Part shown: in pieces, positions 3,701-32,760 of the stretch
Layout of the letters: every line of letters starts with the position of its first letter
Numbering within the stretch: the stretch's first letter is position 1
NCBI GenBank assembly: GCA_965649765.1
Contig: OZ287756.1
Span: forward strand, 32,426,001-32,490,000
Origin: Bispira polyomma
Taxonomy: Eukaryota
DNA: 64,000 nucleotides
Direction: 5' to 3'
Made by a program: the position numbers and the translations under genes
Notes under the pieces: model-generated
What the model was told of the DNA's origin: nothing
Databases searched by the model: none
Seen by the model: only the letters and a program-made list of their open reading frames with translations

Positions 3701-5060
3701 AGCTTTTCATTGCAATGGCCAATCTGGAGAGTGTACGAGTATAATGGGGAATGTTGCATTATAATGGGGAATTTCAATTTGTCATCAAGCTCTGTGAGAA
3801 TGGCGGGGGCTTTTTTTATGTTTGCGACTATCCACTAATAAATTGAGCTTCCAGAGCCAACTCCACCACAGAAGTCCAATAATACACTGCAATGGATGGA
3901 GAAGTGGTGGAGCATCATGAGGAATTGTCTACCAACTAGGAATAATCGGCTACCAACGTAGTAATGGATTATCAAACAGGACAAATTTTTGGTTTTAGAA
4001 ATGGCCACATATAGGCGACATATAGGCGAATGTTTGTCTGATGACACTACCAGGAAGCTACCACTACAAAGAAGCTGGAACCAACCATTTTTTGGAAAAA
4101 GAGAAGGCAAAATTATCGTAGCCCCACCGTGAGGGATGTAGAATAAGGTAGAATGGCGAAGAATCTGGAGGAATTGGCTACCCACTATGGAAAATTTCAG
4201 GTTTGCCGGCGTTCATGATCAAAATTTGCCATTGGGAGATGGACATTATGTCAACGATGACCTTCTCCTATCTTTTTAAGTTTTTCAAATAATTATTTTT
4301 CTGGGCTGGAAACTACAGTGGATACACTAAGTTATGATATTACCAGTATTTTTTTTATCACATTTACCTTACCAATAGTTAAACGTTTAAATTTACTGCA
4401 TAAGTGGAAATATTTTTCTATATAAGAAATTTTCATGTCAAAATTCTATTTATTGCAGTTAAAGGTAATTCCAAGCAATCCAAACTGTTGTACCCATTTC
4501 AAACCATGATGTTCCCCCCTGATTCCTTGTTTGTTTCCTTTCCATCTCCACTGCCTATGTTTTTTCTAGATTTACTTTTTATCGAAATTATTCCTGATCT
4601 TAAATATTTGATTTACCAAAGATTGGGATCCAACTAGAAAAAGGAATGAATCATCAGCATACTGCCCAATTTTTACACAAGAACTGGTTAATTATTTCTT
4701 TAATGTTTTTAAATTTTTTTTAAATTTTTACTTGTGATTGATTACGAAATAGCCTAACAAGATTTTAATTTCTTTTAGTCTTTTCTTGGTGATCACACAC
4801 AAACAATTGCAAGAAGCGCAAACAAATTTGTGCAATGCTATTATGTAATTTATTTCGCCAATGTGGGAGGGCTACTGTAGCGACTATAGCTGTAATACAT
4901 AAAAAGTCTACACAATAATTGTTAATAGTTATGATGTTAAAGTTTAAACAGAAATGTAATTATGAAGACTCTAGTATTAACATAAGAAAGACATGGAATG
5001 GTTATAGCAAATAATTGTGATATAAATGGAGTCTTAACTTCTGAATTACTCCTCATATGT

Positions 5061-6362
5061 CTACTTTCCTTTTGGAATTTCCCTTTCTCTGTAGGTCATC
5101 GTTCCAAGGGCAACAAATGGTTCTGGAAAGTGTGGCAGACTAAATTGATCACATACGTTATCAGTCTGCTTCTTAATTTCATCTGTGAACTCCTCATCTC
5201 TGTACTTTCCCAAACTTTTAAGGCTGATTGGTGTTCCTCTTTGGGAATCCCTTCCCATGGCTACTTCAACTGCCTTGGCATCATATGGTAACCCACAATA
5301 TTCAAATACTTTCTGGTAAGCATATGTTGTATCTACCACAATATCCTCATAGCGGACTCCAGCAATCTTCATTCCACTCTCTATAAAATCAATGTATTGC
5401 CTCATGGCCACACCCCATACAATGGCCCCAAAATGGATGCCTGATAAGAGTTTCACTTCGTAATTATCTGCAGGTAAATTCATTTCCTCAAAAGCCTTTT
5501 TGGTAAGCTTACCCGAAAGCTTGCCTAGGAGTAGCACTACGGCAAGAAGTGGTACTTCTTTACAAATTTTTGAGAAAGACATGCTACATTTCAACCCATC
5601 TCTGTAGATGTACATCACATTACATTCAGGAAAAAGTTCTACAATTAGTGGCATTTCGGCCATGGTTGGTGGGGTTGGTTTCAGCACATATGATTTAATT
5701 TCCTTGGTATGGCAAGGTTTGCACATCAGATTGATACAGTTCTTGAAGATCCTTACTCTTTCATCTTCAGAGACCTTTCCTTTTAGCTGGGTGAGTGCAT
5801 TAATGGCATCTGGTTCGGAATATGCAATGGATGACCCAGTTTCTTCGAAGACTTGAGTCACCAATGTTGAGCCACATCTCCCAGAACTGCAGAGAAATAT
5901 AATCTTGGCTTTGGTTTTTCCAACTTTCTCACCAAGCTGATGGAATATAGGCATAGGCATGACAATCAGCTTTCTGGCTAAGTTAAACTGAGCAAACCGA
6001 ACAAATGCACCATACTTAGATAGGGTCACATTCACACCCTCTTCTACTTCTACAAACACTGCCTCATCTTTATTGATGTAGTACAGACTGATGTGATCCT
6101 TCAAGACATATTCTGGTTCAACAAATTCATTGTGAGTCGTAAGAAAATTATCAGGTCCAGACGGTTGTAAGAGAAGACAGAATTTATGGCGACCTAAAAT
6201 ACTCAACACCTGAACTGAATGTTTGTGTAAATCTTCTTTATAATGTTCTTTAATTCTTGATTGGGTTCCATTGTAAAGCCAAACAAAACATCGGAACAAC
6301 TCAAAAGTCTTCCTGAAGAGTATCCATAATATTTGTTTTATAATCTTATATGCCAAATTCAT
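5061..6362 (-). CDS. Sulfotransferase-fold (PAPS-dependent) protein, 433 aa, intronless CDS
   Basis: Uninterrupted ORF with 5'PSB-like IFLCSSGRCGSTL, 3'PB-like YIYRDG and VRYEDIV motifs; hydrophobic N-terminus; acceptor ttattttgtag| at 6390 implies a 5'UTR intron. Confidence 0.85.
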   Translation of the reverse strand: MNLAYKIIKQILWILFRKTFELFRCFVWLYNGTQSRIKEHYKEDLHKHSVQVLSILGRHKFCLLLQPSGPDNFLTTHNEFVEPEYVLKDHISLYYINKDEAVFVEVEEGVNVTLSKYGAFVRFAQFNLARKLIVMPMPIFHQLGEKVGKTKAKIIFLCSSGRCGSTLVTQVFEETGSSIAYSEPDAINALTQLKGKVSEDERVRIFKNCINLMCKPCHTKEIKSYVLKPTPPTMAEMPLIVELFPECNVMYIYRDGLKCSMSFSKICKEVPLLAVVLLLGKLSGKLTKKAFEEMNLPADNYEVKLLSGIHFGAIVWGVAMRQYIDFIESGMKIAGVRYEDIVVDTTYAYQKVFEYCGLPYDAKAVEVAMGRDSQRGTPISLKSLGKYRDEEFTDEIKKQTDNVCDQFSLPHFPEPFVALGTMTYREREIPKGK

Positions 6363-8299
6363 TGTTCTTTTGCCTGTACCACGTGAAACCTACAAAATAA
6401 GTATCAAGTATATTTATTATAAAAATTTAATGATATATCTTTGCAAATTGTACTGCTCTGTATATGTCTATTGTATGCAGTGCACAAAAAGATGTCCTAT
6501 AAACCACCTATTGATTTTAGCTACAAACTCTCGAAACAAACAAACGGACACCATGATAATGTAGAAATAAAGTATGAGAGAGAGTGGTTTGTGAGGCGAT
6601 TACAGCATGAGCTTCGAGTGGAATATTGGAAAAGTTTTGAAACATAAAGCACATTTTTGTAAACTTTATTTCTATTATTAAGACCATCTATTGTGGTATC
6701 CCCTTAAAGTCAACACTATTACCAACAAACAAAACTATTTTCTAGTTTTTTAAGGTTACTCTACCATATTGGCATTTATTATTCTCCTAGATAAAGTTGG
6801 CGGACCTTTTTAGTACATGTAAAATATTACAAATGTTTATAGTTACTGACCTTAATAACTATATATTTATTATATCCTTCCCTTTGTAGTTGATGTACTT
6901 AAATAACAACTTAAAATTTTTAAAACTGTTTAAAAAAGGGGGTTGATATTTGTGTGAACTTGTATGACATCAAAACTTTTTTGGAGACTATATTTTATAC
7001 AGACATACACAACTATTTACTATGAACTAATCTGTTATTCCACATTAATGTGTATCCCATCCAACCAAACCAAGTTATATGTATTGGTGATAGGAGATGT
7101 CCCATGAACTTCCCTATCAAAGTGCTACATCACTGAAGTTGTCTAGTTGTGACATATTTTTTTAAGTAAAATCCATTCACACAATAATCATGAAACGAGG
7201 TCAATTGATTATGATATAACTCACCAGTTGCTCAGTACATATGACCCAGCATTCCCAAACCGACAAGTTAATAAAAACACATTGATACAATCAAACTTAT
7301 ATGTATAAAGTGTGTTCTTCTTTCAGATAAGCATGTCCTAATTTTCGTTCTTACTTTATCAACTAAAGTCATTAATGCTTATCTTGGTTTCGCTGGTCCA
7401 AAGTTATAATAAATAATACAAAAATTATAACAAAAATACTAACGCAAAGCGACATTTTAACTTATAAAAGATAAGCAATCAATTTTTTATGTGGCTGACG
7501 TGAAAACTGTCTCAAAAACAGTCCTAACACTTGTTTGGGTGTTTAACTGATTACCATATTCTTGAATATAAATGTAATTACAAGTCAGGTGACTGAAAAC
7601 ACTCCCCCCCCCCCCCTCCAAAAAATATAAAAAAATAAATTAAAAAAACCGTCTCTTAAAGTATGCAATCAAGTTAAAGGAATAAAATCAGAATAGTTTC
7701 CAAACTAGTGTCTTTATGTTCAAATTAATAAGGCAATTCGACTTATGCAAATGTACACTTTAATACCACAATATGCTCTTATAGTTCAGTAATGCTTATG
7801 ATAAAAAAATGTTAGATGTTTGGACACAGTTTTTGGTCCCAATTAATTTAGTGAGGATTTATTTTGTTCGTCACTTTCAACCCATTTCGTGTAGTGTCAT
7901 GATGGCTCGTTTACTGGCGGACAAAATAAAAACCAGGGAAGTTGGTCTAGGTTTTTTAGCAAGCACGACCATGAAGGGGTCTGCCACTTCAGTTCACCCC
8001 CACACATAATAAAATTTATAACTACTTTAATACCTGGGGGCGAGTCGACTAACTATTCACTCTGTCTATCCAGGCATACACACACCCATTCTCTTTATGT
8101 GGGAGAACAATACTTTTTCTCACCTTTTTCTAGTCTTCATTTGAAAACGTGGCCCTGAAGAAGCAACACCAGGGAAAGCTATATGTGAAAATCCACGTTT
8201 ATTTACATGAATATTATTATATTGGTTTTATGTTTTTAGTATTTTAGTTTATTTTGTTTGTTTGTTAATTTTGAGAAGTGCATATAACTACAAGGATAG

Positions 8300-9500
8300 G
8301 TAGAACAAAAAGACACCATCGGATAATAAGAAAAAAGAGACTAGTAAAAGCACTAGCAAAGCTAAAACTTCTCGACGGAAATTAGTGAACAGGGACGCCA
8401 GTGACAACAGCATCACGGAGCTAAAGACCCCGTTGAACCAGGTATTATCTGCTCAGTTCGTGTCACCCTTACTTCACGGAACTCAGATCCCCAATGGTTA
8501 CACAGCTGCCACAGTAGATCCTCGTTTACAAGGCCTTCAGCAGCACCATAACGTCCCCATAGGGTCACGTTCGGATGGTCAGATTATGTCTTCAATGCTA
8601 GTAATGCTGGACAAACTCTCGTAATCCAACGAACGGATCACGAACCGACTAGACCAGATGGAAACACGAGTAAGCCAGAATACTACTTTGCCAGCTCCAA
8701 CCACACAGACCAATCTGACTGTAGCACAGCCATTACCTGTAGTAACTGTACCATCACAGCTAACGGTCCCTCCTGCTCACGTCGACTATACAGCCGACCC
8801 TATAGTGCCCACAGTAGATGTATTGAAGTCACTACCCGATGTTCAAGCACTAGTTAACAAACGGCTGGCAGAATACGAGATCCAAGCACAAAAGACACTT
8901 GCCCAAGGTAAGCCGACCCCAAGTCAAAAGTCTGGGCGTTTTAATAGCACAGATGTACCGACGACAGATCCAAAATTGAGGTGGGCAAATGAAGGTTGGG
9001 TGGGGGGAACATCCAGGAAACGGCCCATGTTTGACCAGCTCTCACTACACCAGTGGGCGGCGGGGCAATTAGCCAATGCCATGCAGGTCACAGACCCGGT
9101 TATTTCGAAAGCAATGTGTCAGCAAGTAATTTTATCTCTTCAGGACGCTGCCTGACTTCCGTGGGAAGTGGTTCGTACTTCGTGGTTGCATAACATGCAC
9201 GAGATAGAAGAGGGTCGCCTGTGGGGTGACAACACCCAGTGGGCGTTGAATCGCCTCAACGCATCCCAGATGGCCATGGTGCAATTCATCTCACTCTCAC
9301 GGCTCGTACAACTCTCATAGCAGTCAGTCGTCCACTTCTTCCAGGACCATCTGTAAACTTTACAACACAGGCAAATGTAACAACACAGATCACGGGCAAT
9401 ACAGGCACATTTGCTGGCACTGTGCCACTGTGCTGCATAAGGATGTGGTGCACCCAGAATTCAAATGCTACCGGTCGAATTCATCCAAACAACATGAGGT
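8300..9500 (+). pseudogene. E1 gag-like ORF1 (disrupted)
   Basis: KSGRFN..RWANE..RPMFDQL block shared with other copies; C-terminal CKLYNTGKC..H..RHICWHC..HPEFKC zinc-finger module; internal stops. Confidence 0.8.
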
Positions 9501-9553
9501 CAAACCAAATAACAGCAGTTAGGAGATTGGCCAACCACTAGTGAAACGAACTT

Positions 9554-10947
9554 TTGGGAAAGTATATTGGGGGTAATAACAATAGTGTTGATTGTACTGT
9601 AGCATTAAATTCTAATAGAAGTGATTTAATTAGTGACTATCACAATTTGCATTTAAAAGCTAGCAGATTTGATAGAGCAAACATGACTAAGCTTAGGTTG
9701 AATAATAATTTTAAAAAACCTGATGTTGATGTAAAGTTAAGTAAATTAGATACTGTAAAGATCAGTAAAGCTATATGTAACCTAGAAGACAACTTAGCAA
9801 TTGTTAATGAACAGAAGTTACAACTTAGTTCAGCTGTAGTATAACAGCTGAAATTGCCAGGACGTTATCAAAGCTTGTAAGACAGAAACCAGAGTATTGC
9901 ATGAAGAGCAAGTACAATTTGATAGCAATAATGTACTATTGTATACAAATGCACTGCAAACAGTTGGTAGCAATAATGTACTCCCCCAGAAAAGGGAGTG
10001 TGATAACCAGATTAAGGTTAAGAACTGGTTAAACAAGCCTGCAATAACTGCCAATGCCACCATACAAGTGACAAATTGGTCACATAAGTTTAATTATTGG
10101 GATTACCCACTCCCAGTTTTATATATTAAGATCCAGAAACCAAAAGGACACAAACAAATGTCGCGTAATTCTAAATCTATCATACCCACAAGGGGCTTCA
10201 CTTAATGACAATGTAGATAAGCAAGAATTCGATGGTACAAAATTTGTTTTAAAATTTCTAACGATAGACGACATTGTGGCAGAAATACAAGTTACACCGG
10301 AAGCACGAATCATGAAACTGGACGTCAGAAACTTACGAGTTGACCCGGTTGATGCAATTAAGCTAGGGATCTGCTTTGGAAATGACAAGTACGTGGATCC
10401 AGCGGCAGCGTTCGGCTAGATCCACGGCTCGGCCGCTTTTCAGCATTGTTCGGACATGATTGCTTTTGTCATGGCGAAGAATAACCATAAAGTCTTCTGC
10501 TACATCGATGACTACATCTGCATATTGAATAAAGACACAGCAAACAGAGCATTTCATGAGTTACAGAAATTAGTAGATTCTTTAGGTCTCCCTACCAATC
10601 CAGACAAACTGTCACCCCCTGACACTAAGGCCACCTGTTTAGGGATAGATATAGACATACAGGCAGGAACCATCAGTATTACTCAAGAAAAAATGGAAGA
10701 AACATTTAAATTGTGTAAGGAAGTAACTAGGGACGATTTCTTGGCATTATGCCTTAGAAACATATGGCTGTTATCAGCCACTTATGACATACAACTAGAA
10801 ATAGAACACATAAAAGGCAAAAAGAACATTATAGCAGGTGCACTTTCAAGAGTTTATTCAGATCAATTTTCAAATAAGGAACAAACAGTATTAATGCAAG
10901 AGAACTTCGTTCCACTGAATTTGTTTGAATTTGATATTCGTTTATAA
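9554..10947 (+). pseudogene. E1 RT/RNase H ORF (internally deleted, stops)
   Basis: LKFLTIDDIV, FG*IHGSAAFQ, YIDDYI, CLGIDID, IEHIKGKKNIIAGALSR motifs. Confidence 0.88.
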
Positions 10948-10953
10948 TTTCGG

Positions 10954-11927
10954 GTTCCATTGAAACCACACAAGCCTTATTGGGATCTGCCTGGGCAAGG
11001 ATCAACACAGCCCTGCGCCAAAGACATTTTCAACTTACAATAGTCAATTTAAGACATTTATGGCCTTTACCTGCTTTGCTGGTGTGGAAGTTATAGATAC
11101 ACATATAGTAATTGCCTTCATGGAATACTCGGTACAGAATGGCACTGCACCTGCTGCAATCAATAATTACCTGTCAGCACTAAAATTCATGGCCAAAAGA
11201 TATTCCTGGAACTTGCGTATTTTTGAAAATAATACAGTGGCCATGTTTCTGAGAAGTCTAACACACAACTCTCAATTTAGACCACAACCCAGAGGGATAA
11301 TTGAAATCCACCACCTTATTCTTATCTCCAGATCATGTGTAATTCTCTCTGATCCAATTCTATATAGAGCCATATTTTTGTTATCATTTTTCGCTTTTCT
11401 TAGAATTTCTAATATTGCACCACATTCAAGGGCTCAGTTTGATCCTTCTAGGCACCTTCTAAGAAAAAATGTCATTTTTGGCCCACCAGGGGCCCACGTA
11501 ATAATAAAATGGGCGAAAAACTTACAGCAAGAGGGGAAGTACACATTGTACAGATCCCAAAACTACAGAACAAGACTTATGTCCAGTTAAGGCATTGCAA
11601 CACCTATTACATTCTAGACCAATACCAATTACATCTCCCCTGTTTGCTCCCTGTTCTCCACCACATGAATCAATCATAGATACACACATACGTTCTGCCC
11701 TCTCCTCAGTACTCACACACTCTGGAATTCCACAAAAATCTCACAGTTTCCATACATTTAGAAGATCTGGGGCAACTTTTGCATTTAATAATAATGTATC
11801 CCTTCAGAACATCATGGCTCATGGGCTCTGGCGTTCATCAGCGGTTTGGACATAATTAGAGAAAACATCACAGGCAGCTTCAACAGTCCCCCTCACCTTT
11901 GCTTCTGCTATTTCTTCTTCTTTCTAG
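10954..11927 (+). pseudogene. E1 tyrosine recombinase (frameshifted; catalytic Tyr codon is TAA)
   Basis: FLRISN (box I Arg), HTFRRSGA (HxxR), HGLWRSSAVWT* (Tyr position stop at 11853-11855). Confidence 0.9.
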
Positions 11928-13624
11928 TTTGGCTTGACTGTTTTAAAATTATTTCAAAATTTAAAAATTTACTATTTTAACCCTCTTTACATGTATACTA
12001 TGTCCTAACTTGTAAATAATAAAATCTCAAACCTCGAGTTTTAACACATCTTTACCCCACATATATTTAAAATACCACTTCTTGTTACCTCCTTAAGCTG
12101 GGCACACACTTAGGTGAACTGTAGCACGACCATGAAGGGGTCTGCCACTTCAGTTCACCCCCACACATAATAAAATTTATAACTACCTTAATACCTGGGG
12201 GCGAGTCGACTAACTATTCACTCTGTCTATCCAGCCATACACACACCCATTCTCTTTGTGTGGGAGAACAATACTTTTTCCCACCTTTTTCTAGTCTTCA
12301 TTTGAAAACGTGGCCCTGAAGAAGCAACACCAGGGAAAGTTATCCCACCTCCTCCCCTTTACCACAGCAATATAATAGTGCATTGTTATAATCCACGAAT
12401 AGACATGAGTGCGTTTGTGTAGCTTGCTTGAAATGTATTTGAAATTCTATATGAGGGCGTCAAACAGGATGTAGTATGTTAAGAGGTGATATTTAAAGAT
12501 TTGTGGGTAAATTCCTGGCACGCGCATCCACTTGACGCTGGTGGGAGTAGTCCGAGTCCGTGTGAGGGGTCGTGATCTCTAAACCTCCCGAGTTCATGTT
12601 TAGGGGGCCAGGGTAGAATAAGAACTCTGGACATCACAACCCCCCGCTAGGCGATTTGGTGCCGCAGGGCCGGCCTCCTCCAACTAGCCGCTTGTGGTTG
12701 CCCCTGCACAGTAACCTATAAAAATATGTTGAAACGTTTGACCAATTAAGGGGTACTTGACTTCATATACTGCAATACTTTCACACTGGCCAAGTACATG
12801 GCTGTGTTTTCAGTGATAAAGTAATCTGAAACGTTGGACAGTTTACTATGTGAACTAAAATATGTTATGATAATGGATAAAATCCTGGTGCTTGTACACA
12901 GGTTAGTACTGTTCTCTAAATAGAAGATATGCAACTAATATTTATATTATTTCAGTGAAAGGCTTTGACCTATTATGCTGTTTTTATTTGTAACTTTTAT
13001 GGCTAGTCCTATTTGTGCTGATTTGTGAACGTATATACTGTTATTGATGATACGTTTATATGAACTGTTATGGGTGTTTTAAAATTATTTAAAAATTTAA
13101 AAATTTACTATTTTAACCCTCTTTACATGTATACTATGTCCTAACTTGTAAATGATAAAATATCAAACCTCGAGTTTTACTACATCTTTACACCACATAT
13201 ATTTAAAATACCACTTCTTGTTACCTTCTTAAGCTGGGCACACACTTAGGTGAACTGTACTCTGCAAACCAACAACATTTCGCAAATCCAAAACTAAATT
13301 TCTAACATCCATGCCAGGGCCAAGATTGGAACCCATGGCTGTAGAGGTGGGAAGTGATTGTATTACCACTGCATTACCAGGACCTTTATTGGAAAAATTA
13401 CATGACAAAATGAAATAGACAGTACAATAGGAGCCTGATGGGCGTTGTGTGTGGGCACATATTTCAATATAGTGGTCGTGGCAGCCATATTACTTTTGGC
13501 GACAAAATCAATACCATGTTTCAAGTTACAAATATTGTACTTCAAACGCCAGGGTCCATTACAGCTGCACTATGTTGCACTAAAACCATGTTGTTAATGT
13601 TATGGTGTGCATCTATTTGATTCA

Positions 13625-13990
13625 AGACCAGTGATTTTGAAGTTTTAAGACAGAGATAACAACAATATACTTTTTGGTATTTTGTTCCGTGCATTTAGCA
13701 TCACCACTATTATTTTGACATTGTGTGTAATAACAAGCCATGATATAGCAGTGGTATTATTTAGTGCATAGTAAAGAACAATACTAATACACCCCATAAG
13801 GGAAACACTTAAGTAAATAACTAAGCATTACTATAGGATTAACCTTAACACAAATAAGAGGTCCAAACTTTAACTTAAGGGGAGGGTAGGGTGGAAACTA
13901 TTTTTTCACGTCCTTCCCAGTTGGTGCTTCTAAAGTAGTTTGGTGCAACATCCCTGACTTTTTGGTCACAGAGCATGTTTGCTATCTCAA
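13625..13990 (-). repeat. Detached 3' terminus (end of A2, spacer, B2) of element E3
   Basis: 13625-13795 is a direct repeat of 19457-19626, which follows the E3 YR stop; adjacent - strand gaagcaccaactgggaag resembles the E1 A-repeat end gaagcaacaccagggaaag. Confidence 0.7.
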
Positions 13991-14169
13991 TTACGTCCTC
14001 AAAAACCTACTACAGTGTAGAAGGAGTTGCATACTTAAAGTAGCACACCCCAGTCAATCTTAGGGAAAGTTAAACATTTAATTAGTTACATTTGGCCTGG
14101 TTGGCCTTATTTAATACAGTGTAAAATATAAAATCAAGATAGACAAGGAAGGTCACCTTGCCAGTGTCA

Positions 14170-17100
14170 CACCTAGAAAGCAAAACTTGAAATAGCTAAA
14201 ACCTTTTCTGCACTCTCTGGCCTCCTTGTGACTTTAAATTCCTCCCCACATGTGGGTTGTTTGTTAGTTGTAAAGTAGAAGCTGAAGAGGGCTGGGCGCC
14301 ATATTGGAGAATATGAATTCTGTTTCATTGACTGAAAAAGGAAATATTTTAATAACTTTATACTTCTTTTTCGGAAATTAAGAGTCAAGCCCGCAAAAGT
14401 CGCTTCAAAGATCTGATATTATTACAGGATGGGTCTGAAACCAGCTTCGACAAAAACAACCAGGAAAAGTAATAGAAGTAGTATGGACAAAAGTGAAAAT
14501 TGTGAACAAGTCTGTTAGAAATAGTTCACCACTAAATGGTGCCACGGGAGGTACTTAGAGACTTCTGAAAAACTTCTGAAATGCAAAATAAATCTGTATC
14601 AGACAAGCTCGATGAACTATTGTCAGTGGTGGGGTCGCAAGTTAAGTACCAGGACGAATGTCTACCTAGACAGACACAGAATAAGGTGGTCATGAGAAAC
14701 ACGAAGCTGCCTTCATTTGAAATCCTTAAAAGTGACTCCCATATCCAAGCTGAAATTCACAAGAGGCTGCAACAGTACAATGGTGCTTCACGTCTGGAGG
14801 GTAAAGGTAAATGCTACTATTCTAAAGTATGGTCGCTTTCGAGCGGGCATATACAAAGTTAAAGTGCAATGTAATTGGCCCCAAGACTATTGTACAGTTG
14901 TTCATTCACATAAGCAGCCCACTTACGATGATATGCCCCCCCATTCAATGAGCACAGGGTTCACTTTGTTGCACACTTGAAGAAGGTAACCTTCAGTATA
15001 GGCAAGCTATGTTCAGTTATTACCTAAGCCTTATGCATGATGCAGTAGAGTTAGGGTTTGAAACTGCCAAGAAGGCACACGCGGCAGTTCTGAAAGAGAT
15101 TGAAAAGGGACGTGGGAAATTGGGAAAATGGTGAGTTGATTAAAAAAAAATAAGAGCTCAAAACACCCAGAAAGTCTCGCATGGTAGTCAAGGTGGTTAT
15201 GCTGAGAGTAAGGGCATAGAAACTAGGGTTTGTACACTCTTTAACAAGGGATCTTGCAGGTTAGAATGAGTTCATGTGACAAAAGGGGTGAAATACGAAC
15301 ACTATTACACTTACTGCTGCAGAGAAACACGTGGCACGACCACCCAGCGTGTAAGTGCGTGCATATGAAAAATGACAACAAGGAAACAAAGAAAGAACAG
15401 CAGGTTTAACCCAATAAGGTTCAAGGTGTCTGCTGGCTATGACGGTATAAGTCATATCAATACTTCCAACCTAAAAAGCAAGGCACTTAGTACTAATTTG
15501 CATGATACTTGTATTAATATAAGTTGAAATAACAGAAGCAGTCAGCTAAATGCTGCAGCTGAAATATTTATCCCCAAAGCACATTAAAAGGCAACGTGTT
15601 CAGCTTAATCCAGCGGCTGCAATATTTAAATCAAATAACGAAAAAAGTTCAATGTCGTTTAGTGAATCCCTGGTTACAGCTTAATGATACTGGCGTTAAT
15701 GCTTACGCCTATTCATGTATTAGTATAAACAGTGATAGTTGCACCTCCGTCTTAGACGTGATTGAAAATAGTTTAGTTGATACTTGGTCACAGCCTAATA
15801 ACAACAATATCAGTGCTTATGCCAATTCACGTATTAACAATATTAGTAGTGGCTCAAGAGCTATGTCATATATGGACAATATATCTAACAATGGTTTCAC
15901 ACACACATATGGTAGTGATACAAATGTTTATAGTGAATCAGGTATTAGTAGAGGCGATAATGTCTTTACAAAAAAATATCAGCTGTTTTAACTGCAGTAT
16001 TGAAGCTTGGTATGCAAAGGCTAACAATAACACCTGCAGCAATATTGGTAGTAGTATCAATAACAGTATTGGAAATGTTAACATATGCAGTGGTACAAGG
16101 AAGACCACAGGGTCTCTATTGCTCTACTGCACATGCTATCTTGCACATAACGCAATAATTCCAGCTTGCAACTCTAACGGGAGTCGTATACCTTGCTCCA
16201 TACTCGATCCATCACTAGAAAACTATTAAGGACCATACGGCTCTCCAATCAAATGTAAAATCTGTCTAGGGATCAGGTGGTCTGACTTAAACACGTGTAT
16301 ATGGGAAGTAAATGACCTTGCCAAAAAAAACAGTAAATGTCATAATGTCCTCGAAATGTATAATGATTCAAATGCAGATGTAACTAAAACGGAAACAATC
16401 GAATTCAAAGAAATCAATATTGATGGAAGTTTTAATGATTTAAACAGTTATAAAAGGGGAATGGAAGGTTGTACAAAGTATAGTGACTGTCATAATGTCC
16501 CCCAAGTGTATAATAGATTGAATGCTGACGTACGTGTCACAGAAAAGTGTAATAATTTAAACTGTATACGGGGAATGGATGAACTCGCACAATGCTATAA
16601 GTCTCATAATGTCTTCAATATGTATAATAGTTTGAACACAAACACACACTCAGCGGGAAACAATTATTTCATGGAGTTGAATTCTGATGACAGTCGTAAT
16701 GATTTTAGCTATGTACGGGGAATGGATGGCTTTACAGAGTACAGTAAGTGTCATAATGTCCCAAAAATGTATAATAGTTCCAATTTAGACATAAGTGTAC
16801 AGAAAAGAAGTGAACATACAGAATTGAATTTTAATGACAATCATAACGTCTCCTTTACAGGTAGCAATAACCATAATGCCCACCCGATATCAAATGATAC
16901 TACAAACGGGCAGCAAAGACATACCGTGCTCCTGTATAATAGTAGTAATCATAATATCAAAATGGATAAATATAGCAAATGTTCATATGTTAGTAAAATC
17001 AAGAAGCAATCAGCTGATTACCATAATGGTTCTAGCCATAGCTTTATGGGAAATAAAGTACTTTGCAACTACAACTATACGGAACATACTGGTGATTTTG

Positions 17101-19100
17101 TGATCAAGAATATTTTAGTTATAACAATTTTAGCAATAGTAGTAACAAGTATATATATACTGTACATGAGCAACAATGCACAAATTGTAATAAATTATAT
17201 ACATATACTTGTAGTCTATGTGAAAAAAATAATAAGACTCATATATGTATGGACAGTAGGCATACTGGTATTATGTATACTGAATCTGTATTATACGCGC
17301 ATTTTAGTACCAGTTACAGCAATAATGATAATAGTAACTGGAATAATAGTAGTTTTTATAATACATTCGAGTGTTTGGCTTATTTTAAGCTTAACCCAAT
17401 GATTCACTTACATGCAACACACATAAATGATAGTATACGAGTTTGGTCACGACTCATACATGTACTAATATTTGGAAGCCATAGAACACATAAGTAATCA
17501 AGACAGTGTTCCCCAAAGTCATGTAGGTCATAACCTTTTTAGTAATGACAGTATTATAGTAACTACATACAGCCAATGCACGCAGCAAGATAGTTTTAAA
17601 TGAATTATTGAGGGTACTCTAATTGCTCACAATAGCCCAGAATGATACTCTGTTAACAATTGCAATGCTGATAAGCAAGATACCATAATTGAACCCAGGG
17701 ACTTCGGATTCATTCCACATGCTCCTCCCAATGTCTGTAGACTACTTGATAATACCATAGCGTTTGCTCCTACAGTAGAATGATTAAATAACATCCACCA
17801 GATGGTGAAAAGTAATAGGCTTCTTAACTATCAGGGGGCTAGGGTTACAGTTCCATCAGGTCTAAATATTCCTGCTTTGAGAAGTATGCTTAAAGGGTAT
17901 TAATTAGAAATACTTGGTGAATATGTGCAATTTGGTTTCCCCTTGAATATTGACTATAGTATATTTTCATTTAATTCAGACATAAATAATCATAAATCTG
18001 TGTTATGCAATCCCAAAGGGGTTGATTAATATTTTCAGGCAGAGGTGAAACACAGGGCCATTATTAGCCCTATACAAGGTAAACCGTTTGTAAATTTCAT
18101 CTGTCTCCCTTAATGGCTTGTCCTAAACCTTATGGAGGAACTCGAGTTATTGTAGACCTTTCATGGCCCATTGGGCAAAGAGTCAATAGTTGTGTTTCTT
18201 GGGATATTTATCATGGTATTTCATTTACACTTAAATACCCCACCATAGATCAGGTGGTACAACAAATTAAAAAATTTGGTCCAACAGCTTTATTGTATAA
18301 GATAGATTTATCTAGAGCTTTTAGAAATTTTAGGATTGATCCTTATGACTATCCTGTGCTTGGTTTAAAGTGGCAAAATAATACATATATTGATATGTCA
18401 GACTATTCAATTGCTTAAAAATCATTAATGCTATACAATCTTTGGAAAATTCAGAAACATATATTGCACTGTTTCTCAGTGTGTTTTCGAATTTTTCAGA
18501 TTGGCCTCTTTGGTGCCAAATTCAATAAAAGAGTTTGACAGGAAACACTTTCCATCTAGAGCTGACTTGATATGGGGCACCCCTGGCATTTATAGACTTA
18601 TGACTTGCGCAAAAAAATATGCAAGTTTCTAGACATTACCAAGTTGTGCAATTAAGATTGTTGTCTGATAGCATTATTATGCCCAGTCAAAGCTATTAAA
18701 AGTATGCACAAGAAATTCCCTGCTGGTGAAGAATCACCCCTATTTTTGATTAAAACAAAAACAGAAGTAATACCATTTACAGCTCATAGACTTGGAATTT
18801 CCTCCCAAGGCTTTTGGCTTCCATGCCTTTTATAAAAGTGGTGCCTCATTGGCATTCGACAACACATAGACCTACAAAATATAAAAGCACATGGCAATTG
18901 AAGGGGTGAAGCAGTCTGGACATACCTTAGTTCCACTCCAAAAGCCTCCAGTGTAGCCCCTACTACCTTTCAAAAACTATTGTCCTAAATTCTAAAACCT
19001 ATTTAGGGTTTTGGCCCTTTATAATTTTAACTAACTTTGTGGATACTTAAGTTTTAGTATCAACAGAAATTTCTAATTTATGATTAAACATAGCTAAACA
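14170..19100 (+). mobile_element. YR retrotransposon E2 (Ngaro-like, heavily decayed; boundaries approximate)
   Basis: gag (WPQDYC..QPTYDD, ~14580-15360), long N-rich insert, RT (RVIVDLSWP, LKYPTIDQV, KIDLSRAFRN), YR remnant (FFRLASLVP; AHGN*RGEAVWTYL ~18890-18930); RH and YR start deleted near 18410. Confidence 0.85.
16330..16860 (+). repeat. In-frame 117-150-bp repeats encoding RGMDxxxxYSxCHNVxxMYNS within E2 ORF 16356-17402
   Basis: tcataatgtc..tgtataat core near 16339, 16489, 16606, 16750, plus a partial fifth unit. Confidence 0.8.
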
Positions 19101-19456
19101 CCATAGGTAACGGTATGGCTGGTTAACTATTATATATATATATACACACATGTAAGGCAGAATGCTCTAAAACTAGTACAGGTAACTGAGCTGAACGCTT
19201 CCCAGCTATGATGTAATATAGTTGTTAATAGATGTTAGATTTAACAAATAGATATAATAATGTTAACAAGCAGTTTATAACTAAGCTGTTGTAAACAAAG
19301 TTAATGATATTAGCAATTGAAAACTTAATTGTTAGCAGTACTAGCAAGTTGATGTGAAATAAAGGGTATATATGTTATGTTGTAAATAAACACTAAATAT
19401 GTTTTACATTCGTTGTTCTCATTGGTTTCTTTCCCATAAGACTAACCTTTGAAAGG

Positions 19457-22450
19457 ACCAGCGACCTTGAAGTTTTAAGACATAGATAATAAAAATATAC
19501 TTTTTGGTATTTTATTCCATGCATTTAGCATCACCATTTTATTTGACATTGTGTGACATAATAACAAGCCATGATATAGTAGTGGTATTATTTAGCGCAT
19601 ACTAAAGAATAATACTAATACACCCCAAGTTAAACAGTAATTTTTGAAAAGAATTAGTTTTTTGTTTTATGAAAGGATAGATTTAAAAGTGTTGGGAATA
19701 AGGTTGAGGTTTTGCCCAACCTGAAAATAGGACCAGACGTCTGACGTCCAAGTGCCATGGGATTGTAAACACTGAAGGGGAACATTATGTTGAAACAGCA
19801 GGGATGCTCCTGTCTGAATGCACGGAACCCAAGTGTGGAATTGTTGAGGTCCAAGAATGGCCAAAATGTCCTTTAATACATATCAAACTTTAACATCTGT
19901 TAAAACTTGATATTGGTAGCCACAGGCACTACAAACAAGGAGGACGCCAGTAGCGTTGGAAACTCACTATACATATTAGCCACGGCCTGAACTGGACATA
20001 AAGGTGAACCCGATAATTGGGTTGTAACTGAACATTAGTTTGTCGACTCTGCATGGCCTTAGTCAATTTAACACTGATAACTAGTCCAGGATTTGGAAAC
20101 TTAACATTACGCCTGAGAAGCAAACGCTCACTATCATACATATACACAGAATGTGAAACTAAATTGCTGATACAAAATAACCCAAAGAAAGCTATCAAGA
20201 ATATTGCCTTATAGACACTACCAAAAGGTTTACAATCACACTGTACACAAATGTTCTTAAGGTCCTCGACCCCGAAAATGTCTTTTACCTTGATATGTCT
20301 AGGAATATTATTATTAATAGACCTGAGTAACATGACTACCTGCACATTGCTAAAGACTTCCAAGTTCAAGTCAAACCGCCGGAAATGATGTTTAAGTGCA
20401 GACAAAAAGTTTTGAATTGTAGGGTAAGAAAGCCCTAGTTGAACCAAATGTTCAATGTAAGCCAAAATGACACTAAGTGAGTAGTGTGGATGAGGAACTG
20501 AGTTGGTAACACAAAATTTAAGAAAATGGGACAATGTTCGACTATAAAGAGCCCGAGTCCTGGGCTGAAAGGCAGATTTGGCTCGAACTTGAGCTAAAGA
20601 CAGCTGTGGTCGTAATCTATGCGAACACAAAAAGAAAACATACATAACGAACATTAACCTTAAATATCCCAATTAAGGGTAGTTGCATGGCAGGGGACCT
20701 GACTGAACGGTACAAGAGAAAACAACTCATGAAACTTAGTCCTTTTTCCTGAGTCTGAATACCGAGATAAGAGGTCAGCCCCTACATTGTCAATTCCCGG
20801 CACATGTCTAACCTGAAGTGTGATATTATAAGTGGCTGGGAGTAACCATATGTGCCAAGCAACTTGCAGACCTATCCTGTCGATGCCTATGTGGGAAAGG
20901 TGGTAGTTCCTTACTGTGGGCTGCTGGTTTCAGTGCAGAACCTTGATCAACTGTATGCAGTGTTTTCTCCAGCGTTTGCAACTACCCGTCCCAATATAAC
21001 CTAAACAGATACTAGAGGGGTATTTCCCCCTATTGAAATTTAAGATATTAACCACTGTAATGTTGTCAATATATATAATTATATTGTTGGTTGAAGGCAA
21101 CTATGTGGTGAGAGCAGTATATACATTAAGCATTCCAAGATGCACAATTATAACAGGATGATCAATTAACTGATCCAACTCTAAGTGTTCATAAACTGCC
21201 CCTAAACCAAATAGGCGTCCGTCCATATACACCACTTCACTCTAAAGAACAGGTTGGTCATGTAAGACTACACCATTAATCTGATTAAGAAATTGAACAA
21301 ACCACTTCATGCCAGCAATGAATGACTTAGGAAGCTTAAACCTTCCAGTATCAGGGCAAGTATGCAGTACTTGCAAGATATGGTTAACAGAAAGTCTAGT
21401 TGGTATAACACACTTACTAATGTATAATGGGTTTCCTACAATAATTTACATTTGTGCTTAGTGCCATAGCCTCTGCGACTCCATTCTACACAAAGTTCTG
21501 TAATTTCCTTAAGTTTGTCAGGAGGAAGACTAAGAGTACCTGCTGTTACATCAATTTGTAAGCCCAAACATGTGATAGCTTTGCCTAGAACTTCCAATCT
21601 GGAAGGACTCACTGGAAGGCCTAGATCCGTGAGTAGTTTTAGTAGGCAATCAAAAGTTGTAGTAGCCTCTAACGAGCTATGAATCCCAATTAAATCATCA
21701 ATATAGTTGTACACCACATAACCTTGCTGAGCCATTATATACCTAATACTGTCTGTCATCCTCTGGAAATAATGACTTTCATGCCGTAGGCGAAAGGGTA
21801 CTGCTTTGTCGATATAGTATGCATTTTGCCAATATAAGCCTAGTAAGTGGTAATCATGAGGGTGCACTCTCAAATTACGAAATGCCAAAAGAAGTAACAA
21901 TTAGAACCACATTGCTTAATATAGTCCACCATGTGATCCACTGTTGGATATGTAAGTACAAGGTCTGTATGAAGAAACACATCTTTAGAAACACGATCAT
22001 TGACTGATTGATCCCTTGGCCATGACAAATCTATAACGACTTTCCTGTTTTTTGAGTTAGGTTTATGTCTGGTCAGCATGGAGGAGATATATAAATCTGA
22101 GGACATCCCCATAGGAATCTTCAAGAGCTTCAAACTTGCATTCAGTTTGAATGTAGTGTGTAATATGATCAGGGTAACCATCTGCTGAAGGATGGTTATG
22201 TAGTTGCTGTGTCAATATAGATTTGTCCTGCTCGTCAATGGAAAACCCAAACTCTTGTAACTGTACTAATTGAGTATACTAGAGTTCAACCGCCAAGGTA
22301 CATTTATTATTACTAATGGCCCCATCTATGTGCATGAGATGCTTACTAAGGTGCAAATTTAAACTCTAAATTTAAACTGCCTTGGATATTAACAGTGGAC
22401 AAATTGTCCATTATAATAACTAGTCAAATTACTGGTGTCAAGAACCAAGT
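19457..22450 (-). mobile_element. YR retrotransposon E3 body (RT/RH, YR, B1; 5' end missing)
   Basis: RKVVIDLSWP, LTYPTVD, YNYIDDLIG, YR ORF 19929-20672 and HGTWTSDVWSY; B1 19457-19626. Confidence 0.88.
20875..21015 (+). mobile_element. 5'-truncated S1 SINE inserted in the E3 RNase H region
   Basis: tcgatgcctatgtgggaaaggtggtag...cccaatataacct matches the S1 body. Confidence 0.85.
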
Positions 22451-22967: not shown

Positions 22968-25900
22968 CACCTGCCATGCGGTGTGTGTTACCTAACTTGT
23001 GTCAGTCTTAAGCATGTTGGGTTTAAGTTAGCTTAAAGCGAAAACACCGTTTTTATGTTGTTTATGTTAAGGTCACCTTAATGTGAGGCTGAAGTTTTAT
23101 ATTAAGGTGACCTAAAACGGAGGACTTTTTACTATGTAAACTAATACCAACTATGTACACTAACCTATACTTGTATGTGATGTATAAATAAAATTACCTA
23201 AAATGAACTAAAATACTAAAACAGATAAACATTCCTACTCTCATTTAGTAACTAAATATAGAAAGAACATACAATAGAAGCAGTCTTACAAAGACTGAGC
23301 CTTGAAAAAGGCTGTTTGCTCACTGGAGCTGGCCTCTAGGGTGGGAGTGGCACTTTTCAATGTACACACATCAAGAGTTAGTTCCAGAATGAGGGCCCAC
23401 AGCTTTCCCCACCTGCCATGCGGTGGGTGTCACCTAACTTAAGTCAGTCTTAAAGCATGTTCAGCTTAAGGTTGGCTTTAAGCCACAGCACCGTTTTTTA
23501 TGTTGTTCATGTTAATATCACCTAAATGTGAGGCTGAAGTGTTATGTTAAGGTGACCTAAAACTGAGGGCTTTCTACTATGTAAACTAATACTAACTATG
23601 TACAGTAACCTATACGTGTATGTAATGTATAAATAAAATTGCCCCCCCCTCCTTACAAAAAATAGTGGTTATGCTGTTTTAGGTGTAAGGTTTGTGTGGA
23701 AAGCAGAAGCCACTAAACTAGCTGTGTGTGGTGTTCTCACTAAATACAGCCAACAAATGTTGGATCGCCAATGCAACACCGATGAACTTTGATATGCTGC
23801 AGATCCACCTTGTGGTCGAATGCCCACCAGGCTGCAGAATGTCTGAGGGCATGAAACCCATATTTGGATGGTGTGAGGTTGATCCGAGTTATGGCTTTAG
23901 TCAGTGTTTTCCTTACTTGGTATGCCGTTACCACTACTGTATTGGCGTGATGGACATACTGGAATAAAGGAATTTTGTTAAGGAGGGTTCCTTTAGGTAG
24001 TATAACAGATAGACACAATATTTTTCAGAGTACTGACATTAATGACCTTCTTAAGTTTGACATGCAATGGTGCGACCAATAAGGCCTTCTGATAGTAGGC
24101 TATCCCGGGATCACTAAAAGCCTGTACTGGCACATTATGGATGATTGATTGAGCCTTAATGGCCGACAGGTAGTTAGCCATTTGAGCTGGTTTGACTGAG
24201 TTATAGTGTAGCAATTCTAGAAAAAAATCAGAGGTTAACCACTGTGACCTTGGCAAGGGGTTGGTCAATGAAGGCAGTAAAGTCCTAGTAAATATCTGGT
24301 ACATGGCATTATAAGCCTTGGTCATGGAGCTACAGAAGGCCAGAGGTAGCTTTTTGGCATTGGTGAACAGCAACCGCTGGACTGGGGTGACATCTGAAAT
24401 ACATTACACTACAGGGGATACTTTACTTTATATTTACTTGTAAGTAATCCTGGTTTACATGGCACCACAGAATGTGGCCTACCAGGTAATTGGGCATGAT
24501 TTTGAGGGATATATGACCAACGTGATAACAGGTCAGCCACCCTGTTATTTTCACCTAATAGGTGGATAACCTTAAGGTCAACATCGTGTTGACTTGCTAG
24601 CATGAAGATGGTGCAGGCATATAATGCTAGGACACTGTCTCTTGTTCTACCAGTGGTTAAAACACTGATCACTGCCTGGTTATCACATTTGATTTGTATT
24701 TTTTGGGCATGCCACATGGCCCCCCATAGCGGAAGAGCCACAAAAATGTTGAGCATTTCCAGAGAAGCAATATTTTGAGATTGTAGTTCAGTTGGTATAG
24801 CCAGGGTGTACTCTTGGTTGGCTTATATTCCTCCCATGCCCATTAAGCAGGCATCCAGTTCTACCATAGCTGTGGTGGGTTTGTGATAGAAGAAGGATAC
24901 CCCATTGCATTTTTCGAGAAATAACCATGGTAAATCCTTATACAATTCAGGACTTATGGTGAATGTTTTGCTATAAGTATTGCTTCTGATTTGTTGCAAC
25001 ATCCTGTTGGGGAAGAACCTGGCATACCTGACACATTTAGACTTATACAATAAGAAACCAAGGAGAGATTGGATCTCTGTTTTGGTACACCATTTTTTGT
25101 TAACCAATAGCTGGCATATAGTTTTAATGGATTTTAATTTGTCCTCAGGTATGGAGGTGCTGAAGTCCATGGTATCCACCACAATACCCAGGCATATAAC
25201 CCTGGTATGTGGAGGTACTAACTTCTTCTGGCTAAGGGTTAACCCTAATTCGGACAGCAAGGCCTGTAAACGTTCATATGTGTGGAATATTTTGCTGGGA
25301 ACTGAGCAACATAAGAGGTCATCAATGTAATTCAAGATTGTATGTCCTTCACCTTGCATGATGAACCTAATGGCATCTGAAAGTCTCTGAAAAATGGCAG
25401 ACCCATGTTTGTACCCAAAAGGCAAGGAGCCGTCTATGTAGTAGCCCTTCCAAAAGAGGCCCAGTAAATTTATATCCCCAGGGTCTATTGTGACGTGTCA
25501 GAAAGCCCTGCTTACATTTGCCTTAAACATAAGAGATCCCCTTTCCATTTGCAGTACTTGGTTGGTTATGGTATCTGTGGAGGGGTAAGTAAGTACGAAA
25601 ATTTTATTCAAATAAGCAGATTGGGAGACAGCAGAATTTACAGACTCACCCACAGGTCAGCTAAGGTCAATAATGACCCTTCTGTTATTCGAACTTGACT
25701 TATCTCTGGTCATAAAGGGAGATATATATAAGTCAGTAATAGGGGGTTTATCACAAGGGCCATATATGGCCCCCATTTCAATTTTTTCCTTGAGGTAGTG
25801 GTCCACATGGCTGGGGTACTGCTTAGCTGAAAGGTGGTTAATTTGGTCTGACTTGGCCTTACATTCCCTATTATAGTCAAGATGAAACCCAAATTTAATT

Positions 25901-26280
25901 AGCAGGGGGAGTTTCCAGTCCCAGTATTGTTTGAGATATGTCCCCCATACTTCATATGTTGTGACTTAACAAGTACTTGAAACTCTTTGTAGTTATGACG
26001 GTCATCTTGTCTGAGGTCTCTGTGGAGGTGGAAAATATCTGAGTATAAGTATTGGTCACTGGAGTGGTCAGCAATTTTTCCCCCATTTCACTAAGAGGAA
26101 TAAAACCGAATTTCAATTTGTTTTGACTGTCCCACAGTTTATAACTACTACAGTGAGGGGCATCACGAATGGGCTGTATTTTATTTCCCACACTGTATAA
26201 GTCTGAGGTATATTTGTCTGCATTACACCCACTGTGTACTAGAATCCCCGTTGGTGAGTTAATTGAACCTATCCCTATAT
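22968..26280 (-). mobile_element. YR retrotransposon E4 (RT/RH, YR, B1-A2-spacer-B2)
   Basis: RT LNYIDDLL, RH LDACLMGMG / CDNQAV / HLLGENNRVADLLSR, YR FHALRHSAA; ~230-bp direct repeats at 23411-23640 and 22968-23196. Confidence 0.9.
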
Positions 26281-26289
26281 GTTCTGTTG

Positions 26290-31689: not shown

Positions 31690-32760
31690 CGTTTCTACCT
31701 TAAATACTCTGTACCCAGGAAGCCGGAAATAGTAAAATCACTCCAAATTATGGTAAATTTGCAAGTTCCTTCTTGAAAAAATCTGCAAGTAACCCCCTGG
31801 TTTTTGACTTAAGATTGAGGTTTGCTTCCTTTAGAAGATCCCAAAGTACTGGGAGCTTTTGCGGCCGGGAGAATGTGTCGCTGGGCGTGGGCTCTGCAGA
31901 TTCTGTTTACCTTGTCCATGTCTGTCCATTTTAAGTGATCCAACTCCATATTAGTGAGTAGGATTGCATGGGATGCCTTCGCAGCGTCCCACGAGAAGTC
32001 GTAAGCATCATCCATTAGGTTGGATAGGTAGTCTAGCATCGCCTTGCGCATTTCAGTCAATTTCTGTTCCTGTACACACCGATAGAAGCCCGGCCGTGAA
32101 CTGTAGATCATCAAATGTAGGCCTAATTTTCTTATTGCCAGTCAAAACAAAGTTCTGTGGCCAATCTACACTCCTTTTGTTTGAATATCAGCCCCCCTCC
32201 CCTCTGCGATTTAAGTTTACCTGAGTTGGTCAATTGTTTAATTGCTGAAGTTGTAGCAATCTCTGGTCCACTTGAAGTTGAAGGGCCAAGTTCGATCGTA
32301 GGTAATCCAGCGTGGGTACAACGGGCTCTGGTTCACTTGTGCTACTAGGGTTAATTGGTGCACACAGTGCTGCCTTTGCGACGCAAACGCGCTCCTCCAT
32401 GCTGTTCATCTTCTGGTTAATTGCCTGGAGTTGTAGTAGGACCTGATTGGTTACTGAGGGGTCATCCGCAGCCACCACATGGTCAGTGAGGGTCAATTCT
32501 GATTCATCGTGTGCTGGCCTTTGTCTTTGAATGCAATTTTTCGCCCCTGGGTGCTCGTGAGCTCCTGCATATTTTTTACAGTTGTATTTCTTTCCTTTAT
32601 GCATGATGAGGTATATTGTTTGAATTTATGATTGTCCTTTCTTTATTTAGTAGGGTAGAAACACAAAAATCCCCAAACTTGTAAAAATACTCTATCCTCT
32701 TAACAAAATTTTCAATAATGGCACTGTTACAGGCGCCAATGCTTTATATAATTGCATCCA
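31690..32760 (-). pseudogene. Orphan gag and leader of a YR retrotransposon, probably the 5' part of E4 displaced by E5
   Basis: WPQNFVL..RPTFDDL, MDDAYDFSWDAAKASHA, CRFFQEGTC zinc finger. Assignment to E4 is inferred from strand and order. Confidence 0.75.

Follow-up and report, generated by a model that had tools for sequence, protein, structure and literature searches.

How is the tyrosine recombinase (YR) of Ngaro-type retrotransposons translated? This question, which has been left open in the papers consulted, is raised by several copies of such elements (E1 to E6) and an orphan gag that lie in a window of 64,000 nucleotides of Bispira polyomma DNA (contig OZ287756.1 of GCA_965649765.1). 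A first-pass annotation of this stretch had noted a donor-like splice site at the same position of every gag copy and acceptor-like sites just after the pol stop, and had proposed that a subgenomic mRNA makes the recombinase as a fusion to the Gag N-terminus. The observation is confirmed and the interpretation is supported, since the signals and their phase are conserved in related families and one genomic copy has the two exons joined, as judged from alignment end points, at exactly the predicted bases. However, in the absence of RNA reads or of a detected fusion protein, present-day expression of the fusion and its function remain inferred.

In order to verify the sites, each one was first examined in the window (a slash marks the predicted exon-intron boundary). 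All donor-like and acceptor-like sites were found where the first-pass annotation had placed them, and all donors are in phase 1 of the gag frame. In E1 (plus strand) the end of the Gag N-terminal exon, at 8658-8907 within an ORF of 8658-9155, reaches the first base of the Gly codon at caag/GTAAGC, with 8907 as the last exon base, although this copy is degraded upstream. The predicted intron of E1 extends from 8908 to 10953 and contains the gag C-terminal half plus a truncated RT/RNase H, as tblastn maps gag-C and pol pieces to 8910-10935, and it ends in GG instead of AG in this copy (aatttcgg/GT). The recombinase exon follows at 10954-11924, with a tblastn match to the YR of related families at 10973-11924 and an ORF at 11060-11590, but carries frameshifts. 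In E2 (plus strand, ORF 14581-14862) the site at 14801-14812 reads aaag/GTAAAT, with 14806 as the last exon base, and a second G/GTAAAG lies six bases upstream. The orphan gag displays tcag/GTAAAC at 32215-32224 on the minus strand, with 32221 as the last exon base, while in E5 the same spot (30436-30445, minus strand) reads cagg/ATAAGT, the G of GT being replaced by A at 30441. In E6 (plus strand) the Gag N-terminal exon, mapped by tblastn, occupies 62241-62832, that is 197 codons plus the first base of the Gly codon, and holds a zinc-knuckle-like motif, a long helix and a linker. This exon is 94% identical to the exon 1 of its family over 62241-62831 (G000:C9:32488241-32488831, where G000 is the genome and C9 the contig of the window) and contains two stops, one TGA and one TAG. 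The predicted intron of E6 starts at 62833 with GTAAGC, continues with the gag C-terminal half and then pol, and runs off the window at 64000; exon 2 of this copy lies at G000:C9:32492156, 2156 nt beyond the window end.

Acceptor-like sites in the matching phase were likewise observed for E4 and E5, both on the minus strand. The YR exon of E4 (23740-24393) starts at 24393 right after tatttcag/, 15 nt after the pol stop TAG, and that of E5 (26274-27225), a degraded copy, starts at 27225 right after gattacag/. In contrast, the pyrimidine-rich site ttcgcatag/A found in front of the YR ORF of E3 (20617-20640, minus strand, last intron base 20617) is in phase 2 relative to the YR frame, as the first-pass annotation had cautioned, and is unresolved.

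We next examined if these signals are kept beyond the window. Five related families of this genome, at ~ 70% nucleotide identity, were compared, and all 20 fuller copies read CAAGGTAAG at the Q-G-K of the donor. In a codon alignment of gag from the five families, 168 columns have an invariant amino acid with a degenerate codon and only 8 of them use a single codon; three of these 8 are the consecutive CAA GGT AAG of the donor. Furthermore, AGGTRAG occurs only once or twice in each 5.5-kb element of these families. On the acceptor side, TAA followed by TTTCAG/ (GTTCAG/ in one of the five families) occurs in all five families and in L054 (L numbers designate here individual loci and the families they stand for), and the YR frame always fits the phase-1 donor in the five families. 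Nine more families, from five other assemblies, keep a phase-1 site at the homologous Gly, namely AG/GTAAGC, AG/GTAATT, AG/GTATGT, AG/GTAATA, AG/GTAAAA twice, CG/GTAAGT, GG/GTACGA and, in L053, AG/GCAAGT. The residue before the Gly is Q, T, P, H, S or A and the residue after is K, N, M or T. Hence, 13 of 14 families have GT and all have A at +3, with AAG/GTAAGC in the five families, E1 and L051, and CAG/GCAAGT in L053.

The acceptor is YAG/ in all 14 families and lies in phase 1, 20-21 codons before the invariant R-P-x-T of the YR. All 13 aligned YRs start within one residue of each other at the acceptor, with L8, R21 and T24 invariant, and the codon before the cut always ends in A although it encodes S, T, V, L or A. 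It should be noted that the pyrimidine fraction at -20 to -4 is 0.47-0.82 and only moderate in about half of the families (0.47-0.65 in several), so many other sites in the elements score as well on this crude measure. Taken together, both splice dinucleotides (with GC for GT in L053) and their phase are kept across 14 diverged families from six assemblies while the flanking amino acids change, which is conservation far beyond protein constraint.

The first-pass annotation had also stated that the YR domains have no ATG of their own. This holds for the E6-like families, where the first Met is found at YR residue 187-228 in four of the five families and at residue 60 in the fifth. However, it does not hold everywhere, since three families from other assemblies have a Met 3-5 codons after the acceptor and L051 has an ATG overlapping the pol stop, and in those families the YR could also be started on its own. 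Its mention of a zinc knuckle in the Gag N-terminus is correct: a C-x2-C-x3-H-x7-C motif at residues 16-31 of exon 1 is invariant in the five families and present in most outside families. Interestingly, in the AlphaFold model of Gag the donor (229/230) falls where a predicted helix ends (206-228) and a low-confidence basic linker begins (230-244), the core helical domain following at 256-356 with a pLDDT of 84-90.

To test if the predicted intron has ever been removed, DNA and protein searches were performed exon by exon in the genome. Exon-1 DNA of the E6 family (L033:1003-1402) ends at G000:C1:95309325 and exon-2 DNA (L033:4744-5143) begins at G000:C1:95309326, whereas in L033 itself the two points are 3341 nt apart. 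The protein matches agree, and both the A1 repeat with leader and the 3' part up to B1 are collinear, at 97-99% identity; this copy is the element minus exactly the 3341-nt intron. The call rests on alignment end points rather than on the junction letters, and a one-base G ambiguity is inherent. On this basis the intron was removed at these bases at least once in the germ line and the product was copied back into DNA. Only one such copy was seen, among about 40 copies by DNA and about 100 by protein cross-match, and none was found among the loci compared.

Evidence at the RNA and protein levels was also sought. No joint at the predicted sites was seen in the short contigs of three sequencing runs, but these gave flat, very high word depth, look like DNA and cannot decide. 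Searches of public protein collections with the YR of L042 and of L055 gave only ORF-called proteins of 380 aa or less, the longer of which (P0091, P0141, P0150 and others) carry no Gag part. A Gag-N profile run against 1.84 billion representatives gave 10 short hits and no fusion, a search with Gag restricted to region 1-229 gave nothing, and a metagenome scan with the Gag-N of L055 returned only the known contig.

In light of these results, we consider it well supported, although not certain, that these elements use three ways of expression from one transcript. Gag would come from the unspliced RNA, Gag-Pol, by inference, from read-through of a single in-frame stop, and the recombinase from a spliced subgenomic RNA. 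A GT-AG intron of 3.2-3.7 kb starts after the first base of a conserved Gly codon in gag, and its removal takes out the C-terminal half of gag and all of RT/RNase H. It joins the Gag start codon and about 140-250 N-terminal Gag residues, which hold a zinc-knuckle-like motif, a long helix, a disordered linker and a helical hairpin, in frame to the whole recombinase. A protein of about 520-580 residues is predicted in the E6-like families. That the spliced RNA is the normal source of the recombinase is inferred, and the Gag part may bring the recombinase to the RNA-protein particle or cDNA of the element. If so, splicing efficiency would set the ratio of recombinase to Gag and Pol, the YR 'ORF3' should be modelled as exon 2, and copies that lack gag-C and pol may be spliced retro-copies rather than deletions. 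More speculatively, though somewhat more likely than not, Ngaro-type retrotransposons in general, in hosts from several animal or protist lineages, could make their recombinase only as such a fusion and their Gag-Pol by stop-codon read-through. The zinc knuckle and helix would then tether the recombinase to the RNA or cDNA of the element, which would explain how a site-unspecific recombinase finds its substrate.

Among the alternatives, the one that survives best, although unlikely, is that splicing does occur at these sites but as a by-product or a host-imposed inactivation that removes pol, the YR being translated by internal or non-AUG initiation or from a separate transcript. The single intron-less copy, the Met just after the acceptor in some families and the lack of RNA or protein data are compatible with this view, and rare spliced copies can also come from cryptic, non-functional splicing, as is probably the case for spliced LINE-1 copies. 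However, a by-product would not keep GT, AG, the +3 A and the matching phase across families from six assemblies whose YRs are only 36-41% identical. Moreover, in most families the only in-frame start codon for the whole YR domain is that of gag, and the acceptor sits at a fixed distance from the YR core in every family.

Less likely still, the recombinase could be the C-terminal part of a Gag-Pol-YR polyprotein made by ribosomal frameshifting or stop read-through at the end of pol, with accidental splice-like signals. Indeed, in the five E6-like families, L051 and L058 the YR frame is -1 relative to pol and overlaps or abuts the pol stop by 4-58 nt, YR ORFs are described as overlapping or 'frameshifted' (PMC3783388, PMC9210276), and in one family the pol end reads TAT TTT TAA, where a single-tRNA slip is conceivable. 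Nevertheless, no X XXY YYZ heptamer lies in any overlap, and the relative frame is +1 in L053 and L060 and 0 in L055, L061, L063 and L064. In L055, L060, L061, L063 and L064, 290-440 nt with stops lie between the pol stop and the acceptor. Frameshifting cannot therefore be the common route, and it explains neither the codon-level conservation of the donor nor the intron-less copy. Finally, a DNA deletion at the origin of the copy at G000:C1:95308297-95310503, with the gag motif serving as some other cis-acting signal, for example for packaging or recombination, is very unlikely despite the unread junction and the one-base G microhomology, because the end points coincide to the base with a GT...AG pair predicted beforehand from conservation, the rest of the copy is collinear, and a non-splicing signal in gag would not need a phase-matched AG in front of the YR.

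The identity of the elements was assessed by comparison with the Ngaro group of the DIRS order. The order gag, pol, YR was observed in all copies. PF00589 (Phage_integrase) matches 10 of 13 YR sequences (best E 1.9e-10), R151, K189, H268-x-x-R271, H291/W294 and Y302 are invariant in the alignment, and a weak profile match to XerH (5jjv) was obtained. In pol, RVT_1 (E 3.5e-10) and RVT_3 were found in L039, and RVT_1 and RT_RNaseH in L055, both below Pfam's curated cut-off. Only RT and RNase H families match the 830-880 aa pol proteins at E <= 0.01; hence, as far as Pfam shows, there is no methyltransferase domain, which marks DIRS1-like and PAT-like elements. Split direct repeats of the form A1-[ORFs]-B1-A2-B2 are present in L042, with A at 375-599 and 5888-6112 and B at 5707-5889 and 6603-6785, both 100% identical. 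The A pair was also found in L033 (373-653 and 5922-6202) and in E1 of the window, where a 221-nt repeat at 7962-8182 is 98% identical to 12123-12343 (plus strand), while the B pair was not found in L033 or E1. Published descriptions of the group give three ORFs that overlap or are 'frameshifted' (PMC9210276, PMC3783388, PMC8547959), and among the papers consulted, which do not include the founding Ngaro papers, none proposes how the YR ORF is translated or mentions a spliced YR message. Here, the YR is read as exon 2 of a spliced Gag-N/YR fusion.

The use of host splicing to set protein ratios is already known in LTR retrotransposons, as for the spliced gag RNAs of copia and BARE, the latter making a spliced subgenomic RNA (PMC3735527), and probably the Ogre intron. 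Those splices raise Gag output or join gag-pro to pol, and none makes a Gag-integrase or Gag-recombinase fusion that skips RT. Spliced integrated copies of LINE-1 would likewise record splicing of the element's RNA followed by reverse transcription, but they appear to arise from cryptic sites and to be defective, whereas here the sites are conserved across deeply diverged families and the junction keeps an open frame. A further parallel, apparently arrived at independently, is found in retroviral subgenomic mRNAs, where a donor near the 5' end and an acceptor in front of a downstream gene appear to give a spliced message. In avian leukosis/Rous sarcoma virus the gag start codon and its first six codons seem to be joined in frame to env, and in foamy viruses pol would have its own spliced message instead of a Gag fusion by frameshift. 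In the present elements, 140-250 Gag residues with folded modules are joined rather than a few codons, the downstream gene is the recombinase and not env, and there are no LTRs and no DDE integrase.

In order to place the observation in its genomic context, the window (G000:C9:32426001-32490000, on contig C9 of the 1.04-Gb, AT-rich genome G000, which is in 75 contigs) was first mapped by tblastn with the Gag, Pol and YR proteins of fuller relatives. The map reproduces the layout of the first-pass annotation, with six copies or fragments of tyrosine-recombinase retrotransposons, here called E1-E6, plus an orphan gag, and all window copies are degraded. Among them, E2 (13625-19626) carries a 348-codon ORF (16356-17402) of low-complexity, Asn-rich sequence with a hydrophobic tail, which is unlike any part of the other elements. 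An uninterrupted 433-codon ORF with sulfotransferase domains (PF13469, PF00685) is also seen at 5061-6362 on the minus strand of the window and is probably a host gene next to the transposon cluster.

In fuller relatives the order is gag, RT/RNase H, YR. Pfam finds RVT_1 and RNase H-like domains in pol and Phage_integrase in 10 of 13 YRs, while the catalytic R, K, HxxR, H/W and Y residues are invariant and Pfam finds no methyltransferase domain. Furthermore, the ends are split direct repeats: in L042, a fuller copy from the same genome, A is 375-599 = 5888-6112 and B is 5707-5889 = 6603-6785. These features define the Ngaro group of the DIRS order. Interestingly, both repeat pairs of L042 (375-6785) are 100% identical and several copies of this family are 98-100% identical to each other, and the family moved very recently.

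We next examined the splice-like sites listed in the first-pass annotation, and every one of them is present at the place and in the phase that it had proposed (a slash marks the cut). The E1 donor caag/GTAAGC ends exon 1 at 8907, and the E1 acceptor position reads aatttcgg/ before 10954. E2, E6 and the orphan gag have G/GTAAxx at the same Gly, while in E5 the G of GT is replaced by A. In front of the YR, E4 and E5 have tatttcag/ and gattacag/ respectively, both in phase 1, whereas E3 has a good-looking site in phase 2. In this respect, E3-like YR matches at G000:C5:50834946-50835587 (minus strand) and G000:C5:16654247-16654810 (plus strand) sit inside open frames of 1232 and 978 aa, about the size of pol plus YR in one frame. 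Some E3-like copies may carry the YR fused to pol, which would fit the phase-2 acceptor-like site of E3.

To test the sites on fuller copies, the genome was searched with the E6 Gag, which found many copies, and 20 regions of 9 kb were retrieved. They fall into five families that are about 70% identical to each other in DNA and 92-99% identical within a family. Gag and pol lie in the same frame, separated by one stop, and the YR lies in the -1 frame. In all five families (L032, L033, L039, L041, L042, L044, L046-L050, e.g. L042:2065-2067) the stop is TAG, preceded by CAA and followed by a conserved ..C GGA CTG, and in four families from other assemblies (L051:5392, L055:1338, L060:1391, L061:1345) TAG or TGA is followed by an 826-917 codon pol frame, which points to Gag-Pol by programmed stop read-through. 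In L033, a copy of the E6 family, four tandem 39-nt (13-codon) repeats lie in the N-terminal extension of pol (2771-2981).

At the donor, all 20 copies read CAA GGT AAG at Q-G-K. In a codon alignment made with one natural copy per family, 168 columns have an invariant amino acid with a degenerate codon and only 8 of them use a single codon, three of those 8 being this consecutive Q-G-K, while other invariant Gly columns use two to four codons. One family has a second TAATTTCAG inside the Gag N-terminal exon, just upstream of the conserved helix (L049:~765-773, L050:~717-725). At the acceptor, all families read TAA, the pol stop, followed by TTTCAG/, or GTTCAG/ in one family, and the YR frame needs exactly one base from upstream. 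After the acceptor, the YR is open for 325-326 codons in the copies that keep it, with the first Met at residue 187-228, or 60 in one family.

YR proteins found in public collections were then taken back to their contigs, giving nine more families from the ENA assemblies ERZ22147071, ERZ25069837, ERZ25072384 and ERZ27317745, one of them also present in JGI sample 3300031687 and in Logan run SRR8862662. Their YRs are 36-59% identical to that of L042. In each family a phase-1 G/GT lies at the Gly 8-15 codons before the K-S-G-R-F/Y block of Gag, except that L053 (4851-4898) has GGC instead of GGT, in the context CAG/GCAAGT, which is the usual context of the rare GC-AG introns. In each family a phase-1 YAG/ also lies 20-21 codons before the invariant R-P-x-T of the YR. 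The constraint is on the bases and not on the protein. Indeed, the residue before the Gly is Q, T, P, H, S or A, the residue after it is K, N, M or T, always from a codon starting with A, and the codon before the acceptor cut encodes S, T, V, L or A yet always ends in A. The metagenome contig L055 (1-5299) starts and ends with the same GCATGGGAT and holds one whole element without flanks, the same element occurring in an ENA, a JGI and a Logan record; it could be a circular or tandem form, or a transcript-derived assembly.

Among the other routes to a recombinase, an own start codon is possible in L060, L063 and L064, which have a Met 3-5 codons after the acceptor, and in L051, where an ATG overlaps the pol stop, but it is not possible in the others. 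Frameshifting or read-through from pol cannot be the common mechanism, since no canonical slippery heptamer lies in any pol/YR overlap, the YR frame relative to pol is -1, +1 or 0 depending on the family, and in five families 290-440 nt with stops lie between the pol stop and the acceptor.

In order to find direct evidence of the splice, sequencing runs, protein collections and the genome itself were searched. The three runs that hold these elements behave like DNA, and protein searches made exon by exon found no fusion. However, the genome holds a record of the splice on the plus strand of G000:C1. With L033 as the source of all queries but the YR protein, the Gag-N exon protein (residues 1-197) matches 95308734-95309324 at 95% identity, and the YR protein of L042, from residue 2, matches 95309331-95310296 at 75%, the two protein matches being six bases apart and in the same frame. 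At the DNA level, the last 400 nt of exon 1 of L033 (1003-1402) match 95308926-95309325 at 97% and the first 400 nt of its exon 2 (4744-5143) match 95309326-95309725 at 98%. These two matches cover the whole of each query, so the two exons are neighbours to the base, whereas the same two points are 3341 nt apart in L033 itself. Furthermore, the A1 repeat with leader (373-810) matches 95308297-95308733 at 97% and the YR end with B1 (5500-5921) matches 95310082-95310503 at 99%, and the spacing of all pieces fits without any other gap. This copy is therefore, as judged from the two separate exon searches on which the junction rests, the element minus exactly the predicted intron, which is what reverse transcription of the spliced RNA would give. 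It was the only one found among about 40 copies compared by DNA and about 100 by protein cross-match, although YR matches of an E1-like family at G000:C2:70272849-70273334 (minus strand) and G000:C9:66010273-66010758 (plus strand) lie in open frames of 602 and 755 aa instead of the usual ~330 and may be further intron-less (Gag-N + YR) copies. In light of these results, the observation is confirmed, and the interpretation of a spliced Gag-N/recombinase fusion is supported by deep conservation of both sites and their phase and by one exact intron-less copy, while present-day expression, the protein and its role are inferred in the absence of RNA data.

The inferred fusion would start with exon 1, which begins at a conserved MGRGKK start and holds, in order, a C-x2-C-x3-H-x7-C motif that is invariant in the five families, an acidic stretch, a long helix, a variable Pro/Ser/Thr/His-rich linker and a conserved helical block that ends at the donor. 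In an AlphaFold model of Gag, of which only the local pattern is used given a mean pLDDT of 56, the donor at 229/230 lies between helix 206-228 and a low-confidence basic linker, and the confident helical core follows at 256-356. The splice thus cuts at a predicted domain boundary, and it would replace the Gag core and its C-terminal Cys/His region with the recombinase, whose first conserved helix starts about 20 residues after the junction.

For the DIRS order, the papers examined describe overlapping or frameshifted ORFs and no splicing (PMC9210276, PMC3783388, PMC8547959, PMC6681497, PMC7192593), although an earlier mention of this intron in the founding Ngaro papers cannot be excluded. What appears to be new is a spliced message that joins the N-terminal part of Gag to a recombinase, whereas the use of splicing by retroelements is already known. 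Subgenomic messages made by splicing are generally standard in retroviruses: in ALV/RSV the gag start and six codons appear to be joined to env, and foamy viruses probably make Pol from a spliced RNA. LINE-1, for its part, seems to leave spliced retro-copies, and among other retrotransposons copia and BARE make spliced gag RNAs (PMC3735527).
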